A stretch of 64,000 bases of DNA. Origin: Guillardia theta CCMP2712 (Eukaryota; Protista; Cryptophyta). The DNA lies in assembly GCF_000315625.1 (NCBI RefSeq), contig NW_005434646.1, positions 124,001-188,000 of the forward strand, read 5' to 3'. Below are positions 8,062 to 63,205 of this stretch, in pieces. Each line of letters opens with the position of its first letter. Positions within the stretch are counted from its first letter, which is position 1. The notes beneath the pieces were generated by a model. The model was given only the letters and a program-made list of their open reading frames with translations. It had not been told where the DNA came from and ran no database searches. Position numbers and translations under genes: made by a program.

Positions 8062-10119
8062 TCACATCTCTCCTGCAACGTCTCCCTGCCTCTCTGCTGC
8101 CTCTCCTGCCCAGCCCCAATCCACCGCATGACCGTCCACTAGGCCTTCCTGGTAGCGCGGCTTCTCCTGGCCATCGCCCGTGAAGGCATTAACACCCACC
8201 ACAGGTGGAAGGTGCTCAGCTTCCGTGAAGATCGGTCGACGCCTTTCACGTTGCACTGGGGAGACAACCTGTGGTGACCTGCTCCTGCCCCGGCCCTCCC
8301 GCCATGATCTCTCAGGCGTCTTCTGCCGCTGCGGCGGGGAGCGGTCCCGTCGTCCTCTGTCCAGCTCTGGCTCCCTTCTCTTGAGCTCTGGGGAGATTCT
8401 TCCAGAGCGACCGACTGATCCAGCTCTTCCTCTCCACCTCCCGTCAGATTCTCTCCTATCGTCTCGACCGCGCGTGGCGTTGGGCTCGTCTCTCCTTGGG
8501 GGGGAGCGACGGCGGGGAGGAGAGCGATTCCCGGGCATCTGACGGCCTTCAGAGCGACGATCGCCTCGTCCCATCTGGTGAAAAGTTTGAGCAGGTTCCC
8601 TGAACCTGGGAGGTGACGCCCTCGATCGATCCATCTGCGGTGGAGGACGGCGTTGGAAGGACCGGTCTCGATCCTCCCTCCCTTGGAAGGACCGGTCTCG
8701 CTCGTTCCTCCTCTGGGGGGACCGGTCTCTCTGTACCCTTCCCTGGGGGGACCGGTCTCGCTCGTTCCTCCTCTGGGGGGACCGGTCTCTCTGTACCCTT
8801 CCCTGGGGGGACCGGTCTCGCTCGTTCCTCCTCTGGGGGGACCGGTCTCTCTGTACCCTTCCCTGGGGGGACCGGTCTCGCTCGTTCCTCCTCTGGGGGG
8901 ACCGGTCTCTCTGTACCCTTCCCTGGGGGGACCGGTCTCGCTCGTTCCTCCTCTGGGGGGACCGGTCTGGCTCGATCCTCCTCTGTTCGCCGAAGCGATC
9001 CCTACTTCTGTCTGGATTCACTTCTCCTCGTCCGAACTCTGGCCGTCGATCACCTCTTGCATCAAAGTTTGAACGTTTCCCTTCTCCACCGTCATGGCCG
9101 ACCTTCGCCCCTGGTCTGCTTTGGGCGTGGTCTCGAAAGGGAGCACGATCCGGCGAACTTCGTCTGCGTCTTGGAGATCTTTCGGCATCCTCCCAGCGCT
9201 TATCCTTCCCATGATCATCTCTGCCTCTCATCGAGTTTCTTGCCATCTCCCCACTCGCCACTGGGTTCTGATCATCCGGAGGTGTCCTAGGCTGGAACAA
9301 TCGTTCACCTCCTCCCAGCGGTGCACCGTCCCTCGGCAAGCTGGGGGAGTCGCGAGCTTTCCATGCTGGAGTTGTGAGTGCCCGACCCCGACCAGCCCCA
9401 GGAGAAGAGACGAGCGCTGGTTGCATGGGACGAAAGCGATCGCCATGTCTGCGATCGGGTGTGGAAGACGTGTTCACTTCAAACCTCCTCCTTTTGGAGA
9501 AATCTCTGTTGTCAGGCTCTGGCGATACAGCAGGTGAGTTTCTCCCTCGCTTTCCAGGTCTTCTGCCGTCCGATGAGCCGTGAGCAACATCAGCTACAGG
9601 AGATCTGTCAACAGGTGTAAGTGAGCAGCCGCAAGGATTTGATATCGCGCACCGATCTCTCCTAACGGAAGCCTGATAATCAGCCGAAAGTTCTGTGTTG
9701 CGGGCATCTGATTCAGGTATCTGATCTCTGGCAGTCTCAAACGACTTGTCTCCTCGTGCGTCTCCTTCTGCTGCTTCATCTTGAAACGCCGAGGTCGGCA
9801 GGTTCGAATCATCCCTGCGGACATAGCGTTTGTTGTCTACACTGTGGATCCTCAAGTTGTCCGTCCTTTGGACGCTCTGATCGGTTTGTTTCGATTCAAG
9901 CTTCTGACCATCCCGCTTTCGCTGCAGCACCTCCCTCAGGTCATACCCTATGTCCACTGACACATCAACATCGCCATTCTCTTCTTGGGTTTCTGGGCCT
10001 TCAGAGGACAGCTCCTTGTCACCATTTTCTAGCGATTCTTCCTCTTTGCTCTTGGGGTTGTCAGGAAGATTCGCTCGAGCTTCTCTGCGCTTCTTGAGGC
10101 TTTCACGCAAGTCAATCAT
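8062..10119 (-). CDS. Arg/Asp/Ser-rich (RS/RD-like) low-complexity protein
   Basis: 726-aa ORF with RDRSP and RRRSPPRR motifs; likely start MIDLRES. Confidence 0.65.
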   Translation of the reverse strand: MIDLRESLKKRREARANLPDNPKSKEEESLENGDKELSSEGPETQEENGDVDVSVDIGYDLREVLQRKRDGQKLESKQTDQSVQRTDNLRIHSVDNKRYVRRDDSNLPTSAFQDEAAEGDARGDKSFETARDQIPESDARNTELSADYQASVRRDRCAISNPCGCSLTPVDRSPVADVAHGSSDGRRPGKRGRNSPAVSPEPDNRDFSKRRRFEVNTSSTPDRRHGDRFRPMQPALVSSPGAGRGRALTTPAWKARDSPSLPRDGAPLGGGERLFQPRTPPDDQNPVASGEMARNSMRGRDDHGKDKRWEDAERSPRRRRSSPDRAPFRDHAQSRPGAKVGHDGGEGKRSNFDARGDRRPEFGRGEVNPDRSRDRFGEQRRIEPDRSPQRRNERDRSPQGRVQRDRSPQRRNERDRSPQGRVQRDRSPQRRNERDRSPQGRVQRDRSPQRRNERDRSPQGRVQRDRSPQRRNERDRSFQGREDRDRSFQRRPPPQMDRSRASPPRFREPAQTFHQMGRGDRRSEGRQMPGNRSPPRRRSPPRRDEPNATRGRDDRRESDGRWRGRAGSVGRSGRISPELKRREPELDRGRRDRSPPQRQKTPERSWREGRGRSRSPQVVSPVQRERRRPIFTEAEHLPPVVGVNAFTGDGQEKPRYQEGLVDGHAVDWGWAGEAAERQGDVAGEM
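8658..8975 (-). repeat. Coding tandem repeat with 60-nt period (two 30-nt subunits) encoding RDRSPQRRNE-RDRSPQGRVQ
   Basis: Sequence lines 8701, 8761, 8821 and 8881 are identical. Confidence 0.95.
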
Positions 10120-25560: not shown

Positions 25561-27603
25561 ATGCTGAGCTTCTTCAATGACTCTGAGCAGGCTCCCCTCA
25601 TGATGTCCTGCCTGGAAAAGCTTCGTCCACGAAAAGATCTGAGCAAATTTTTCGATCTCTGGCAAACTAGATTTTTTGTTCTGGTTGACAAACAGCTGAA
25701 ATACTTCAAGCGCTATGAGAATTACTCCAATGGTGAAGAGCCTCTCGGAGAGATCTCGTTGGAGAGAGCCTGGTTGATCGAGCAGGAGTCGAATAGCCCG
25801 AGCAAGAAGAAGGTCATCAGCATTAGGACCCCCTGGCGAGATTTCACACTTCGTACGGATCAAGAGCGGATATTTGAAAATTGGATGAAAGCATTCGATT
25901 CTATCGGGCTCGTCAAGTGCGCCAAGGAGGAAAAACGTTTGAAAGAAGAGGCTCGGAAGGATCTGTCTGACGAGGACAACGTCACATGGACTAACGAGAT
26001 GCTGTCCAACTCAGATCACAGCCAGTCCAATGACAGATCTCACCAAGACTTGTCCCCACATGTACAACTGCAGATACACGAGCGTGAGAACTCCTCTTCG
26101 TCTTCCAGCCATGAATTCAACCGATCAGATGATGTCATTTCCTGCAGTCTCTATCTGGCCAACGAGACAGAAGTTCGACTTGATTCGACCCCGCAGAGTC
26201 TGATATCATCACGAGATAGAGCAACAGCCGACGGTGAAGGAACGATCCATGTGCACCCTCTGAATGCTGCTCCATCCACCCCCGAAGGGCTTTCTGCGGG
26301 TCTTAAGAAGAGCAAAATCAAGGACAAGGCTCGTAACTCAGCAGACAAGTCACGCTCAACAAGACCAAGCTCTTCAACAAAGAATGAGCTACGCGAACTT
26401 CACAAAGAAAGTGCAGTAGAGGCAACAGGTGTCGTGAAGTCATGTGAAATTCAGTGGACTCCAGATTACGATCCCAACACTTCTCAGAGTTCAGTTTCTC
26501 CTCCTCCTCCTCCCCCACCGCCGCCGCCGCCGTCCTGTCCTCCTCCGATTCACCGCGAACAGCACAGGGCCAGTGACACTTCAAAGAAGAGCGACGCTAC
26601 AAGCAAGCTCTCCTCGAAGGCTGCGTCTGCTCCATCCTCAACGTCAAGCCAAGGCGCGGCATCGTCATCAGGAAACAAGCAAGTATCTTCTCTGCCGCCT
26701 TCCTGTCAACTGCCTCCTCCTCCTCCCCCACCGCCGCCGCCGTCCTGTCCTCCTCCGATTCACCGCGAACAGCAAAGGGCCAGTGACACTTCAAAGAAGA
26801 GCGACGCTACAAGCAAGCTCTCCTCGAAGGATGCGTCTGCTCGATTCTCAACACCCAAGGAGAATAGATGTACTGCATCGTCGTCAGGAAACAAGCAAGC
26901 ATCTCCTCCTCCTCCTCCTCCTCCTCCTCCCCCGCCGCCGCCGCCGCTGCCTTCTTGTCATCCGCTTGCGTCTCCAATAATCGACTCTGTGAAGCGAAAT
27001 TCAAGTGGTGCTTCATCACTTTTGCCGTCGCCTCCTCCTCCTCCTCCTCCTCCTCCTCGACATTCGCCATCGGCATCAAGAGAGAAGTCAGAGCATTTAG
27101 CGCATGGTCGTCCAGACTTGAAGGTGAGAGCTTGCGGTGTTGACGATTGCGAGCAACCACTGAAGTCACTTCGCAGATTCAACCCGACAACACCTGTGCC
27201 GCTCCTTCTCCGCCTCCTCCCTTTCCTCCTCCTCCACTCCCTCCTGGTCACTGCACCATGCATCAAATGATCGTTCTTTGATGTGTGTGATCGCAGGAGC
27301 AGGGAAAGAAAGGAAGAAAGTAGCCCCGCCCCCCTCCAAGCTCCGACCTCCACCAACAAAGAGCAAGAGCGGCCAACACAAGTTCAAAGAGGCGGGGCTA
27401 GGTGAGTGAACGATCTCCATCTTCTCAACCAACTCGCAGCTCACCGGCGTCGGGCAGGAGAGGAGAGGAGAGAAGCGCAGACAGAGCGATCAGAGGCACT
27501 GACGCTGCAAGAAGAACTTCGGAACAAGTTGAAGGGTCGGCGAGTGAAGTCAAGAGGATCGGAGGAGCTGAGAAAGATGAGTACAGGACCAGCCTTATGT
27601 TGA
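25561..27603 (+). CDS. PH-domain protein with polyproline tracts (probable actin/membrane adaptor)
   Basis: PH signature WQTRFFVL..LKYFK..EPLGEISL..FTLRT..ENWMKAF; four poly-Pro runs; last exon LQEELRNKLK. Confidence 0.85.
26500..26905 (+). repeat. Internal ~210-nt duplication in the PH protein
   Basis: PPPPSCPPPIHREQxRASDTSKKSDATSKLSSK..SSGNKQ occurs twice. Confidence 0.9.
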
Positions 27604-43926: not shown

Positions 43927-46263
<2,337 letters not shown>

Positions 46264-47035
46264 AACTGTCAAAATCCTTGGTTTGACCGCGGGTGACAAG
46301 ATCGAACAAAGTTTCAAGATCAATCAAAGATACCCAAGTCTACTGCGAAGTCTTGATTCATATCAGAACTAGTAGAAACATCTTCGGCGGGTAAGCAAAG
46401 CTTTCGGCCCTCCACTCCAAAGCAGTGAAATTCTTCTTAAAACTGATTGGACCTTTAGAGATCACTTTTGCTCCCCGGAACAACAGGCTTGTTTCATGAT
46501 ATCCTCTGTGATAGACCACCAATCTTTCGCTCACACAATTCAATGATCAAAGTATTCGCTCTCTCAACAAGGTCCCCTTGGGCCATCTTTCATGGTTCTC
46601 CTGTCTCGCTCTATTTCTTCAACCTTCTTTCCTCTCGCTCTCTCTCTCTTCTTGCTCTTCTTCTCTCCTCCTCCTCCTCCCTCATCTCCCCCCTTCAGCG
46701 CTCCTGTTGTCCATTCCAACAGAGCCACTCAAATCCACCCACCCTCGTCCTCCGGCTCAAAACCTACTCTTGTGAGTACCCTACCCCACTTTTTGATGAC
46801 CTCATGGCTTCAAACCGACCCCCTCGCTCTATTTTCAAGAATATACCACCCTACCCATGTACTATTCCACACTTGCCCGGCGTTGCCCGGGATTTACTCA
46901 CTTCAAAAACATCAACCGCTGCAAATTTCATACCTCTGAGCCTCGGAGCGCCTCTGCAACAAACTGGCAAGAAATTGTTAGGGAGTCTCCTTGAAAACAG
47001 CTTGACAAGCTCGAAACTTGTGTAGAGTGTGAAGC

Positions 47036-49411
47036 TTAGACAAGCCCATTGCTGTCATGGAACGAAGAGCACCCTTCAAACGACGAGTCTGTCTTTACCT
47101 TCTTCACTCTCCCGTTGCTCGTGGCATCCGCTGACTCCGAGGCCTCCCCCAAGGCCCTCTTCTTCGCAGATTCCAGCTCTCCATGCTCGTCTTCCAGCCG
47201 CATCCCTTCGAACTTCGACTGGGAGTAATACTCCTTCTTCACCCATTCCGGCAAGGCCCTCCGCTTCACCACCTGCACCCTGTCAAATCAGCCAGCCACG
47301 AGGGCAGTCGGTTAGGCCATACCTTGATCGAGATGCTGGTTTGAGTTGGATCTGTTATGTGTATCCCCAATAGGAACTCCTTCACCTGACAAGAAATTGG
47401 CAGTTGATACACGAGCGCTTCACACGGAAAGAAGGAAAGGGAGTAGCAGGAGGAGGGAGGTAGAAGAGAGGGAGGAGAAGGTGAATCGCCCCGTGGGAAC
47501 ATCGCCGAGCGAAGAGAAATGGATGAACATACGGGCTGGGTAAAGTCGACGCTCTGTCCTGACGCTTTCATGTGCCTGACGAGATTGTCGTCGAACTTCA
47601 GCCCTAGGTAGAAGAAAATGTTCTGCCAAGGGCCGTCCTCGGGGTCCCCTGACGACAACAAGGTTCACTGGCTTCACCGGGCCCGTTCCTTGAGGCATCA
47701 CCTCCTCCCAGATGCTCCGCTGGTATGGGCCCGAAGTGCCGCGTGCAAGGATGAACGATATACAGCCCTAATTGACTAGTCTTCGCACCCAAAACCACCC
47801 AGACATCCAAACATCACAAACGCAGCTGAAAAAGACAATCGCAGCACCGTCAGTTTCTCTACTAGCTTCCGTATCTGAGACTCGACATATCCAGAGAAAG
47901 CTTCAATATGCTTCTCTGAGCCAAGTACTTCGATCTTTACAACCACAGATGAGTTTGAATTCGACCCTTCACATGCAAATCCATCACCTGCACAAAGGTC
48001 CCATACTGTTTGAAGAACATCGCAGGTTCAAACAGATCATTGTACGAGGACTAAGGCACAAGGTAAGTATGCAATCAAGACAGCAGATGCAGGCTTGCAC
48101 TACTTCGCCTTGAGCCAGCCCTTGTGTCAAGCTGTTTGCTCTGGAGATTTCATTCCTAATCACGTTGAGCGCTGAATCTGTGACGTTGAACGTTGAGTTG
48201 TCCATGGGGTACGTCGGGGTGATGACGGTGAGAGGACGTCTGCGAGCAGGTCAGTGATGGCAGCTGGAGCACGGGAGCAATCTTCATGCCTTGAAAAATG
48301 ACGTCTGGTAGGATCCCACGCATGCAGGTTATACCGTTCTTGGCCGTCCGGAGCCTGACACTCCTCCGGAGGGGCGACGATGATGGCGTCTTCGAACTTC
48401 CAGTGCTGTCAAGCGAAGAAGCAATCTTCAGCTCGCCTGCAAAAAAACCGCGATAGATACCTTGTACAAGTGGAAGAACTTCTCCAGCAGAAGCGAAGGA
48501 CACATCTTGGGGTAGAGCTGCGCCACCTGTGCTGCCATTATCCCCCATGCTACCCCACCTGGAAACCCAATCTTGTCGAGATGAGGGTCAAAGGCTGTCG
48601 AGCTGGAGTATTGCGACTTTCACTCACAATTTTCGAGTAGATCTCCCTGCGACGAGCCCAGAGCTTGATCGCTCGCAGCAGGACTTTGAAGTTCTCGATG
48701 TTGGGAACTCGTTGCAACAACTCGTACGTCACTCGCGGCCCGTTCAGGCAAGTGATCTGGACAACGTCAGCCTCGACAGACTCACATTGATTGCCAGCTC
48801 ACATCCTTCGTGTCCTCAATCCTCAAAAGATGACGGTCCAGAGCAATGTTCAAATCGGGAGGAATCGACCCGCAAGGCATGCGGACCATGCCCAAGTCGA
48901 TGTCGAAGCCGCAATACTGAAACTTGATCACAGGAGCAAAGGCATCTGCCAATGACTTGATGCATGTGATGCCTTCAACCTCTGCTAGCTTTGCAGGTAC
49001 TCGAGAGAAGAACTCCGATCGGTTGACGACCTCTGGTATGATACACAGCAGGTCGATGTCGGAGTCGTGAGAATGTACCCCCAGGCAATAAGAGCCGAAT
49101 GGTGCAACCCTGCATGAGCAATCGAAATCCAGCGAGATGTTCTTCGTCTTGCAGATCTCGCAAGTCCAGGTCTTCATAATCTTCTCGATGTTTTCCAGAG
49201 CCTGCTCTCTTCTCTTGTTGCATTCCTTGTCTTCATACGCCCCAAGTTGTTTCAAAGTCTCCATCAGCTTATCATTCAGCTGCATGTCGGCTACAGAGGG
49301 ACCATCGAACGAGAGTGGCTGTGCTTTCTTGTTTACTTTGTACTCGATCTTCTTCTCCTCCCCCAGGCCTTTATAGATCCATCTCATCGCGTCGGCCTCG
49401 TCCTCGGACAT
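47036..49411 (-). CDS. PAP: Canonical-type poly(A) polymerase, copy B (tandem duplicate)
   Basis: Same motifs and introns as copy A, offset 3148 nt; catalytic GS and DxD intact. Confidence 0.93.
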
Positions 49412-49841
49412 GATCGGTCGTTTCCTACCTCCGGAGTCCCTTGTCCACCGCACCACCCTACCAGTGTGCTGGGCACCACCCACCTCCTCTGGTGCGTTTG
49501 CTGGGATACGGCCCCCGAATGATACAAATTCTTTACTCACTAAATTTAACTAAAGTTATCCCCCTTCTGTCGAAACCGCTGTAACGTCTGTGTTTGAAAG
49601 TATGCAAACAGACTTTCAAACTTCAAAGTTTAGGCACCGCAACTTGATCCCACCCCCCCCATTCCCCCATTTGATCTCTCATTCGCACCCCTTCTGCACC
49701 ACCCCTCTCCTCTCACTCCCTTTGGCCTCGCGGACCCCCTATGGTCCTGCGTAGACCACCCCTTCAATGCCCAAGCTCGTGTTTAGGGAAGAAAAAGGTC
49801 AACTTAAAAAAAAGTTGCTCCTGCTCGTGCAGTCGGTCGCC
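49412..49841. promoter_or_regulatory. Probable bidirectional promoter between PAP copy B and RPL13a
   Basis: 430-nt head-to-head spacer with C-run/CACCC motifs and AT-rich elements (TAAATTTAACTAAA, CTTAAAAAAAAG). Confidence 0.55.
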
Positions 49842-51129
49842 ATGTTCGAGCCTACCGTCGTCGTTGACTGCCGCGGTCACCTGCTGGGAAGGCTTGCGAG
49901 CATCATCGCTAAGGAGGTACCTCCAGCCAGCCTCCGAGAGACGATCAGAGCTTGATAAGTTCGTTGGGGAGGGGGGAAAGCGACGGGTCGAGGGAGGTCG
50001 AGGGAGGTCGAGGGGGTGCCATGTCTTGTTTCACTTGTCTTGCTCCTTCCGTCCTCTCAGTGCGAGTTCGATCCCGAGGAGCTGTGTTGATGAACGAGCA
50101 CGTGAGGAGTTCATATCTGTGATGTGTGTGAAGAGACGCAGGATACGGTGGAACAGAGATTTGTTCTGAAAGGGCAGGAGGTGCTGAAAGGCAGGCAGAA
50201 GATGTGTATGCGTGCAACGCTCGTTGTGTGTTCATGGCTTCCTGTCATGAGATCCTCTCACAAATATGTTTTCCATGCGTTTCAAAACTTTTTCCTAGAG
50301 TGCTAACTCTTTCTCAACAGCTTCTCAATGGCCAGAGGGTTGTGCTTGTCCGCTGCGAGGAGGTCAACATCAGCGGGGCCTTCATTCGCAACAAGCTTCT
50401 CTTCATGTCCTACCTGAGGAAGAGGAAGAACTCCAACCCTTCGTCCGGCCCCTACCACTTCCGTGCCCCGTACGTACTCGCCTTCCCCTTCCTCCCTCCT
50501 GACTAGTTTCCGACCAGCTCGCGCATGGTGTGGAGAACTATCCGTGCTATGATGAAGCACAAGACTCCCCGCTGCCAGGCTGCCCTCGACCGCCTCAAGG
50601 TGAAGGAGCAGGAGGGAGAGAGTCAGAGGCTCACGAGTTCCCGCAGGTGTTCGACGGAGTCCCCCCCCCATACGACAAGGTTAAGAGGATGGTGATGCCG
50701 GACGCCCTCCGCGTCCTCAGGCTCCGGCCCGGACGCAAGTACACCAACCTCGGGAGAATGTGCAGCGAAGTTGGATGGAAGCACAGGGACACCGTGCTTG
50801 AGTTGGAGGAGAAGCGCAAAGTCAAGGGAGCGGCTTACTGGGCTAAGAAGAAGGAGGCCATCAAGGTCTGTTAGCTCGCTCGCTCCTCGCTCAGCTGACC
50901 TTGTTTTCTCCGTCCTCGCTTCTCCGCGTTTTCAGATCCGCAGAAAAGCCCTCCAGACTGCGGTACTTGCTGACCGTTGCCTGCCGGCTCCGTGAAGTTG
51001 ACGATGAGTTGCAGGCTAAGGATCCCAAGGTGCAGAAGATGCAGAAGATTCTTGATATTGTTGAGAACCCTAGGTAAGACTGTCAGTCTGTACTGCCCGG
51101 CTCTGACTCTCAGCCCTTTCAGCATTTAA
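49842..51129 (+). CDS. RPL13A: 60S ribosomal protein L13a (uL13)
   Basis: [25 protein letters not shown] / [27 protein letters not shown] / SRMVWRTIR / [11 protein letters not shown]..; introns 49917-50320, 50470-50517, 50600-50646, 50866-50935 and two more; stop TAA 51129. Confidence 0.97.
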
Positions 51130-61500: not shown

Positions 61501-63205
61501 GCATGCGATCATTCTATGGTAGAGCATAATCGAATAAATCACCGAAGTTGACAGGAGTGAATCCAGTATTCGATCCAGTTCTCATTTGAAATTGTGCTTG
61601 GTTTTGCCCTTCATTACTTGATGCTCCCTGATTTTCCAGGGAAATTGTCAGTGTGGATCAGTGAATCATCCCTTCATAATGGAAATAACGTGTGCGAGAA
61701 GCAGATCAGATGAAAATAATGTACCGTGAAGACAAAGGGTTGCGGAGGGATCGAATTCTGCGTGTTTGAAGTCCAGGGTGATTGATTGGAAGCCTGGGGA
61801 AATTGATTTGAAGCCTGAGGGCGTTGATTTGAAGCCTGAGGGCGTTGATTTGAAGCCTGAGGGCGTTGATTTGAAGCCTGAGGGCTTGGATTTGAAGTCT
61901 GGGGGCTTGGATTTGAAGTCTGGGGAGGTTGATTCGAAGTCTGGGGGGTTTGATTCGAAGTCTGCGATGACGAATTGGTCGGCTGGGATGGCTGAGAACC
62001 TGAACTGCCACCTGGCCCCGCAGCATCTTGTCGTTGTGCCCCTCCAGCTGAGTCTCCAGACAGGTCATGATCGTTGCCGCCGTCCCGCTGATTGTTCGGC
62101 CTTCCCGTCTGCGTGCTATCAGTGTTCGGTGAGGGCGTGTTCAACACGGAGGTTTGACCAGCCGCCATCACCCAGCCAAGGGCCATCTGCTCAGGGCGAA
62201 TCCAAGGATCCGGACGGTTGGGAGGAGGAACGCGGAACGTTCTCATTGCAACTTGCAGCGGGTTCCCAAACTTCAAGACGTCAAGCAACCATATTTCAAG
62301 TCTGAGCTCGGTCGTTTCATCCTCCAGTCGACTCAACGCAGCCAACCCTGAAGAAGAGATTTCGTCCGATGACAAGCCATCTTGGCTGGCGGATCCATAG
62401 GTGAAGTCTGTCTGATGCTTCATGCACATGAGATCGAGGTCCAGTTTCTTGGATAGATGAACGATCATTTCTCTCATCCTGTCCTTATCCGCACATATAG
62501 GCCATCCTCGTTTCATGAGAGTATGGACCGCAAGGCATGCCGTCCCAACAACAAAGAAATTCCCGAAGTCACGATGCCAATTGGGCCATTTGAAAGCGCT
62601 CTTCACAGCTTCGATTGCTTCAAGAATTTCTTCATTGCTTGTCACTCGAACATTTACCGTTTGCCCACTCTGCCCCGGAAATTCAGGGAAGGTCGGAAAC
62701 TCGAATCCGCTGAAAGGCCTGATCACCATGATAGTCAGGCATAGAATGGGGAGGTTGCGATGATATGTTCAGACCGGACCTGTTCGAGTTGAGAAAACCA
62801 CTTTGGACTGCGGGGCCTTCATGATTGGCATGCATCCCATTGGGAGCATTGGTGGCGGCTCCTTGAGCTTCCAACTCTGGGTCAAGGGTTACCCCGCGAG
62901 CATGCACAACATCACATGAAACCTTCTCGAGTTTGCACCAGCGCCACGTTCTCCAGCTTCACTTTGATCCGCTTTCCTCCATCAGTCCTCACACAGAGCA
63001 GCCCCTTCCCAACAATATCCTCCACATACCCCATGTGCCCATTGTAAGAAACACTTCTTTGCAAGCTTTGTAGCATGACCCTATCTCCAATCTGTACCTC
63101 GGCAGGTTCCCCCTCGACGGGAAAGAATGGCCGATCGTCGCAGCGATCATCGTCGCTGCTGACTTCAATGTTGTCCCATCTGCTGTAATCAACATTCCTG
63201 CTCAT
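58524..63205 (-). CDS. Large multi-exon protein: Cdc37-like N-terminal motif, SH3/KOW-like domain, Q/P/S/N repeat and ankyrin repeats
   Basis: MSRNVDYSRWDNIEVSSDDD; GDRVMLQSL..YNGHMGYV..IKVKLENV; ankyrin exons QPLHLASFHGHMGVCRFLL, ACLMGFADIVKELL; plausible GT-AG joins link the parts, but this could be two genes; gap at 59092-59191. Confidence 0.6.
61785..61965 (-). repeat. 21-nt coding tandem repeat (PQ[AT]SN[QP]x), about 9 units
   Basis: GATTTGAAGCCTGAGGGCGTT repeated on the + strand. Confidence 0.9.

Follow-up and report, generated by a model that had tools for sequence, protein, structure and literature searches.

Many eukaryotes retain several canonical poly(A) polymerase (PAP) paralogues, and those of mammals (PAPOLA, PAPOLB and PAPOLG) and Arabidopsis (PAPS1-4) are old, expressed genes. 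In canonical PAP, ATP is selected through an induced fit that involves many contacts. Yeast Pap1 (2Q66/1FA0) and bovine PAP-alpha (1F5A/1Q78) have a three-domain architecture that is common to both of the Guillardia theta PAP copies described here, which we have designated copy A and copy B. A comparative paper reports that Asn226 of the yeast enzyme contacts the N6 of adenine, that bovine Val154 is thought to stabilise adenine and that GLD-2 has an Asp at the position of yeast PAP N226 (PMC7470959). Nothing on N226, V154 or M310 was found in PMC10578478, PMC7498324 or PMC6232586. As in mammals and Arabidopsis, where expression can differ between paralogues, G. theta has the canonical PAP duplicated in one genome. 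The mammalian and Arabidopsis paralogues keep their ATP-site residues (PAP-gamma, for example, has N and V at the sites equivalent to G. theta residues 245 and 159 in structure alignments), whereas copy B has lost the conserved Asn, its transcripts were undetected and the G. theta pair is diverged by only ~1%. The reading that we favour, with a probability of roughly 0.6, is that copy B is a young duplicate, silent or nearly silent, on which selection has been relaxed.

The window, a stretch of 64,000 nucleotides from contig NW_005434646.1 of G. theta CCMP2712, was aligned with itself using BLAST. This revealed one long direct repeat, the PAP pair, in which 43929-46263 and 47083-49411 shared 98.4% nucleotide identity across an alignment of 2341 nt that contained 20 mismatches and a small number of indels. 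The two copies lie in tandem, both on the minus strand, and each has 11 exons and ten short introns. The features of the locus were as follows:

43927-46263, minus strand: copy A, canonical poly(A) polymerase, GUITHDRAFT_94125, 564 aa

45655-46263, 45480-45608, 45313-45423, 45142-45257, 44956-45091, 44840-44902, minus strand: coding exons of copy A, first part

44700-44786, 44554-44632, 44385-44500, 44175-44237, 43927-44112, minus strand: coding exons of copy A, remainder

47036-49411, minus strand: copy B, canonical poly(A) polymerase, GUITHDRAFT_162826, 581 aa with the last exon read straight through

48803-49411, 48628-48756, 48461-48571, 48290-48405, 48104-48239, 47988-48050, minus strand: coding exons of copy B, first part

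47848-47934, 47702-47780, 47533-47648, 47323-47385, 47036-47272, minus strand: coding exons of copy B, remainder

48240-48289 (copy B) and 45092-45141 (copy A), minus strand: GC-AG intron 4; the joint 45091>45142 (ends CT..GC) is present in the X6 RNA contig

46264-47035, minus strand: unique spacer between the copies, containing the copy A promoter and 5' UTR (to at least 46622)

The exon structure was drawn up by three-frame translation by eye, after which the joints of copy A were confirmed by the splice joints of an RNA contig from run X6; the copy B model was made by transferring these joints. GT/GC..AG ends were kept at all ten introns, and the frames of both copies were open. The transcript-derived MMETSP ORF P0266 was exactly the copy A model, and P0162 (GUITHDRAFT_162826) had 100% identity to the copy B model over residues 1-561. 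In P0265 (GUITHDRAFT_94125), which otherwise corresponded to copy A, the 147-nt intron 9 was kept in frame. The 90% protein cluster of P0162 also contained P0265, P0266, two partial MMETSP ORFs and one JGI ORF. Existing annotation describes GUITHDRAFT_94125 and GUITHDRAFT_162826 as poly(A) polymerase, with the same name for both in UniProt, and a literature search found no paper on either.

The near identity of the copies, and the presence of assembly gaps elsewhere in the window (N runs at 38.7, 55.5 and 59.1 kb), would be in keeping with alleles or haplotigs misplaced in tandem, an assembly artefact that the earlier note had itself named among the outcomes that would refute its proposal. However, none of the N runs was within 4 kb of the pair, and in two DNA runs of different studies, X2 and the likely source run X1, the gene body was about twice as deep as its flanks. 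Contigs of the flanks and spacer had a depth of 56-59 in X2 and those of the gene body 112-122; the corresponding values in X1 were 3.7-5.6 and 9.6. Additionally, a single-depth contig (46234-47121) joined the 5' end of copy A to the 3' end of copy B in both X1 and X2. The haplotig reading was rejected because of this 2:1 depth and the bridging contig in two DNA runs, which leave it extremely improbable; the tandem pair is real and does not represent alleles.

Pfam analysis of the predicted proteins of copy B (P0162) and copy A (P0266) at E <= 0.001 returned, in each case above the cut-off, PAP_NTPase (PF20750; 151 bits for B and 155 bits for A), PAP_central (PF04928; 146 and 149 bits) and PAP_RNA-bind (PF04926; 44 and 48 bits). 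The other Pfam matches were overlaps with the generic NTP_transf_2 and MTPAP-like palm families, and no further family was returned. Non-canonical TENTs have NTP_transf_2 and a PAP-associated domain, whereas copy B has the canonical PAP_central and PAP_RNA-bind and is therefore not a member; its likeness to TENT4A/B, GLD-2 and Cid1-type enzymes is confined to the non-A tailing function that had been proposed for it. Both copies aligned with bovine, human-gamma, budding-yeast and fission-yeast PAP structures with E-values of 1e-65 to 3e-81, those for the bovine and yeast PAP chains being 3e-81 and 2e-79. The nearest relatives outside G. theta shared only 47-50% identity, with the exception of one 215-aa fragment (70%). 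Animal PAPs have a long Ser/Thr-rich C-terminal region, which is missing from both of the short G. theta proteins (564 and 581 aa).

The FGS, DSDID and FDIDL motifs were the same in A and B, and the catalytic D118, D120 and D172 (yeast D100, D102 and D154) were unchanged, in agreement with the earlier note's statement that the catalytic GS and DxD of copy B are intact. Column 118 was D in 230/230 PAPs and column 172 was D in 228/230. The triphosphate and ribose contacts K234, Y243, V253 and T329 (yeast K215, Y224, V234 and T304) were present in both copies and are conserved across PAPs. Copy B thereby had the canonical PAP domains, the catalytic core and the triphosphate/ribose contacts; the Asn that contacts adenine and the conserved Val beside the adenine were absent from B alone and present in A.

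Comparison of the coding sequences of B and A showed 12 replacements (A to B: G18E, K44Q, Q66K, V103A, V159A, N245K, F280H, S312A, H318R, A335D, I341V and K562T), five synonymous changes, one 2-aa in-frame indel and a 17-aa tail found only on B. This is close to the approximately 12 replacements and 4 silent changes that had been counted by eye. The introns differed by three substitutions and a 12-nt indel. The identity between the A and B proteins was 97.7%, too close for structure prediction to tell them apart. Four replacements had been flagged previously, at bases 48631, 48201, 48936 and 49104, and each of them was found in a base-by-base list of differences. Their equivalents, taken from HMMER alignments to PDB chains, were as follows:

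48631-48633, minus strand: N245K, AAA in copy B and AAC in copy A (at 45483-45485); equivalent to yeast N226 and bovine N239

48935-48937, minus strand: V159A, GCT in copy B and GTT in copy A; equivalent to yeast V141 and bovine V154

48200-48202, minus strand: A335D, GAC in copy B and GCC in copy A; equivalent to yeast M310 and bovine Q323

49103-49105, minus strand: V103A, GCA in copy B and GTA in copy A; equivalent to yeast F85 and bovine F98, two residues before FGS

The alignments to yeast and bovine PAP agreed with the N226, M310 and V141 equivalences that the earlier note had proposed. Of the two copies, only B departs from yeast Pap1 by a Lys in place of N226 and an Ala in place of V141, and only B carries Asp where the yeast enzyme has M310. 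Two of the four flagged sites, N245 and V159, are documented adenine contacts; V103 occupies a variable position, and M310 is a putative residue of the adenine site.

The rarity of the copy B residues was determined in an alignment of 230 PAPs pooled from two homologue searches, one a representative-library search with exon 1 and the other a word search seeded with the best full-length relative, which between them had pointed to P0162. Position 245 was N in 216 of the 225 PAPs that aligned there (96%) and K in none. Position 159 was V in 204/229 (89%) and A in none. Position 335 was variable (M in 137, Q in 46, A in 23, and also I), with D in 0/230, and position 103 was a variable hydrophobic residue (F, Y, V, L or I) among the 230. 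Within the 20-21 cryptophyte-type relatives V159, N245 and A335 were invariant and F280 nearly so, while V103 was V, I or L; the states of copy A at these five positions matched 19-21 of the 20-21 relatives. This bears out the earlier note's view that copy A keeps the canonical Asn and Val, which are the ancestral states. K44 alone looked derived in A, on the basis of the single closest fragment. Judged from these alignments, nearly all of the polarisable replacements lie on B's side, with A apparently keeping the ancestral states. Metagenomes were searched for wild variants with a protein pattern and with an exact DNA pattern spanning the N/K codon, and neither gave a match.

The gene-body contigs of X1 and X2 were mosaics of A and B letters, as is expected of a de Bruijn assembler that pops the bubbles between near-identical copies. 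The contigs of X1 or X2 showed 15 of the 18 letters that are specific to B in 47298-49411, and the B letter of V159A was present in an X1 contig. The B letters at 48184/48201 (one bubble) and 48631 were not re-seen in the Logan contigs of X1 or X2, which had A letters there. These 3/18 letters could mean that K245 and D335 are reference errors, or the chimeric consensus of a collapsed repeat, such that the copy B protein is closer to A. However, both sets of contigs are double-depth mosaics in which one path is kept per variant, and the two unseen bubbles compare with ~2.75 expected by chance (11 bubbles, two runs). Furthermore, the 15 other B letters were confirmed, and 48184 and 48201 are linked within 17 nt, unlike random error. 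An error in the reference is accordingly improbable, and the K245 and D335 letters are neither confirmed nor contradicted by the contigs of X1 and X2.

Analysis of RNA data revealed transcripts of copy A. An X6 RNA contig of 1909 nt had the A letter at 10/10 diagnostic bubbles and extended into the private 5' UTR of A, an outcome with P = 0.001 if A and B were equally abundant; X6 contig 15 spanned 45655-46622. The X6 depth was 0 over the diagnostic region of the last exon and the 3' end of copy B (46872-47245) compared to ~80 over that of A, and RNA coverage of the spacer reached zero before the copy B stop codon. In the raw 3'-tag reads of X24, of which ~6% of the RNA run was read, the depth was 47 at the 3' end of A and 0 in the bins over the B stop codon and 3' UTR. 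A depth of 3-4.6 at 47059-47432 in X24 was rejected as a sign of copy B expression: the ~30 reads were accounted for by 31 reads that map to two places, 47181-47272 is identical in A, and the depth was 0 in the bin that holds the private stop and 3' UTR of B.

Between 0.32 and 0.47 of the sampled words of copy B were present in each of eleven RNA-like runs from six studies, where the computed expectation was 0.43-0.49 from A transcripts alone and 0.60-0.68 with B transcripts. All of the transcript-derived ORFs in the 90% protein cluster (3-4 from MMETSP and one from JGI) were of A-type, and the B-type came from genome annotation only. A B-type transcript was found in none of the X6 contigs, X24 reads, 11 RNA-like runs or MMETSP/JGI ORFs. 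As contigs drop minor variants and the RNA conditions were limited, expression of B at a few percent of A, or under conditions outside these data sets, could escape detection, which also counts against silence as part of the young-duplicate reading. Copy A is the transcribed working gene and B is probably silent, or nearly so, in the RNA data examined; lack of copy B expression was one of the outcomes that the earlier note had listed as fatal to its proposal, and as far as these RNA data reach it is the outcome that was obtained.

The dN/dS between the copies, calculated by the method of Nei-Gojobori, was 0.74 (13 nonsynonymous changes at 1317 sites and 5 synonymous changes at 375 sites), with dS of ~0.013. 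With the 18 substitutions available, a dN/dS of 0.1 was rejected (P = 5e-5), as was 0.2 (P = 0.008); 1 was not rejected. Of the 564 positions, 84 are >=85% conserved across PAPs, and the replacements of copy B struck two of these out of 12, compared to 1.8 expected at random. The replacements are thus spread over conserved sites as if without constraint. It had been suggested that the excess of replacements fits either positive or relaxed selection; relaxed selection fits the random spread, but positive selection finds no support in a dN/dS that is not >1. There was no disabling lesion in copy B, with no frameshift, premature stop or splice-site loss. This open frame is uninformative, because at the present divergence the chance that 18 random point changes create no stop codon is 0.44.

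In the young-duplicate reading, copy A is the working gene, and copy B lies between upstream and downstream flanks unrelated to those of A. From the time when the two were last identical, copy B would have changed with no sign of purifying selection; that time, at the dS of ~0.013, would be either that of the duplication or that of the most recent gene conversion. N245K and V159A would then be unconstrained and probably activity-lowering changes in a redundant copy, with relaxed constraint as their likely cause and reduced activity of B as their likely effect, and the open frame and splice sites of B would survive only because the copy is young. Copy B resembles a young unprocessed duplicate, or pre-pseudogene, in its introns, new flanks, undetected transcripts, dN/dS near 1 and changes to invariant residues. 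Unlike a typical pseudogene it has no frameshift, stop or splice loss, and that name cannot be asserted from sequence. What speaks against the young-duplicate reading is that the open frame, every splice site and the three catalytic Asp residues of B are preserved, as they would be in a functional gene, and that three of the 12 replacements fall in the putative adenine site.

These three, V159A, N245K and A335D, are at positions reported or, for A335D, proposed to line the adenine site, compared to ~0.5 expected if the pocket comprises ~25 residues, which is our own post-hoc estimate. This mild enrichment hints at adaptive change, and is the sole pointer in that direction. The earlier note had proposed from such changes that copy B may be a neofunctionalised tailing enzyme. 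In this reading copy B would be expressed under some condition outside the data examined, and K245, D335 and A159 would reshape the base pocket to give non-A or mixed tails or a change in processivity. The contact to adenine N6 is lost with N245K, V159A is a change at the adenine site, and K, A and D were found at positions 245, 159 and 335, respectively, in 0/230 PAPs. The catalytic residues, K234, Y243, V253, T329, the frame and the splice sites are intact, and a divergent ribosomal-protein gene lies ~430 bp from copy B, so that a promoter may be available. However, since ATP is selected through many contacts, the likelier effect of a single Lys is a weaker enzyme and not one with a new specificity. 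Given also that B-type transcripts were lacking in the RNA sources examined, that dN/dS was indistinguishable from 1 and that the changes are spread as they would be without selection, the inference of a non-A tailing enzyme was left unsupported, and we consider neofunctionalisation quite unlikely. It is more doubtful still that B is a naturally re-engineered canonical PAP in which Lys at the position of the N6 contact, together with Asp at the M310 position, alters the choice of nucleotide or makes it promiscuous, and which is switched on solely in a life stage or under a stress that the RNA data do not represent.

If copy B were nonetheless a non-A tailing enzyme, it would be the first derived from a canonical PAP; current understanding is unchanged unless it proves to be expressed and active. 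For annotation, the working PAP GUITHDRAFT_94125 can be set apart from its probably non-functional twin GUITHDRAFT_162826. For enzymology, copy B is a natural example of a canonical PAP, intact in other respects, with Lys in place of the Asn that contacts adenine N6, and is a cheap construct with which to gauge the share of that Asn in ATP choice.

The homology between the copies runs from the first base of the ATG to the T of the copy A TAA, introns included. Upstream and downstream of the copies, the flanks gave only CT-rich low-complexity matches. A simple tandem duplication should also have copied the 0.8-kb spacer, and these boundaries would be better explained by an older pair whose conserved block, along with its 46-147-nt introns, has been homogenised through gene conversion. 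Such an older paralogue is more likely to be functional, which weighs against the young-duplicate reading and in favour of copy B being an ordinary functional second PAP, expressed at a low level or under specific conditions and homogenised by gene conversion, with differences that are tolerated or slightly deleterious. An intact ORF, homology that runs exactly from the ATG to the stop of A with unshared flanks, and the frequency of multiple canonical PAP paralogues in eukaryotes are all in keeping with a second PAP. Purifying selection is hard to square with the loss of an Asn conserved in 96% of PAPs and a Val conserved in 89%, dN/dS <=0.2 was rejected and no transcripts were found, and we regard a functional second PAP as possible but rather unlikely. 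Gene conversion could also keep a silent copy looking intact, and so does not decide the status of B.

The PAP locus of Baffinella frigidus, compared for synteny as a guide to the ancestral copy, shares no neighbours with the G. theta pair. With homology that ends at the start and stop codons and short introns that are identical, the pair is suited to the study of gene conversion or unusual duplication in cryptophytes. The longest difference-free stretch between the copies was 424 nt, compared to a mean spacing of ~106 nt between differences, which by rough arithmetic is unremarkable as a sign of gene-conversion mosaicism.

The homology between copies A and B was found to be sharply bounded: it begins with the first base of the ATG start codon and breaks off at the first base of the copy A stop codon (TAA). 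As window positions, the boundary sites were:

43927-43929, homology-block boundary site
46261-46263, homology-block boundary site
47083, homology-block boundary site
49409-49411, homology-block boundary site

Comparison of the flanks of copy A with those of copy B revealed no similarity except CT-rich low complexity. Despite these unrelated flanks, the two copies shared all ten introns in nearly identical form. A plain tandem duplication leaves unexplained why the block ends at the ATG and the TAA with its introns kept; such sharp-edged homology may instead stem from gene conversion acting on an older pair. The C-terminus of copy B (47036-47110) differed between the NCBI model, which was 572 aa, and the simple read-through frame, which was 581 aa, the differing end of the NCBI model resulting from a predicted extra splice. 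Neither C-terminus was supported, as no copy B transcripts were found.

Introns notable for their splicing or their splice sites were:

44238-44384 (copy A) and 47386-47532 (copy B), intron 9, 147 nt
45092-45141 (copy A) and 48240-48289 (copy B), GC-AG intron with donor GCATGA, conserved in both copies
44501-44553, intron 8 read-through in the JGI transcript ORF P0269

Intron 9 has a length divisible by three and contains no in-frame stop. It was kept in some transcripts, as contig 14 of the RNA run X6 was unspliced (depth 34) and another contig was spliced (depth 71). The resulting 49-aa insertion was also present in the MMETSP transcript ORF P0265 and in the NCBI model GUITHDRAFT_94125 (613 aa), and the intron-9-retaining form is possibly an alternative isoform with the insertion inside the RNA-binding domain. 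Use of the GC-AG intron was borne out by a joint in an RNA contig. P0269 (475 aa, A-type) continued through intron 8 and was afterwards out of the PAP frame; it is a copy A transcript with a retained intron.

The 5′ UTR of copy A was at least 359 nt, as an RNA contig extended to 46622 (region 46264-46870). RNA depth upstream of copy A was gone by ~46870, ~170 nt short of the copy B stop codon, and the two copies therefore lie close together in head-to-tail order. The following gene was divergent from copy B, at an ATG-to-ATG distance of ~430 bp:

49741-50300, plus strand, ribosomal protein uL13 (RPL13a-type)

Although this neighbour is presumably highly expressed, exon 1 of copy B had no RNA contig coverage.

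Between 5 and 20% of the stretch's sequence words were found in the freshwater and lake-water metagenome runs X17-X20. G. theta is a marine isolate; these words could represent conserved parts of relatives, or carry-over. Self-comparison of the window additionally revealed short tandem or direct repeats:

8659-8968, ~60-nt register, at 8.7 kb
26500-26946, ~210-nt offset, at 26.5 kb
61760-61964, ~42-60 nt, at 61.8 kb
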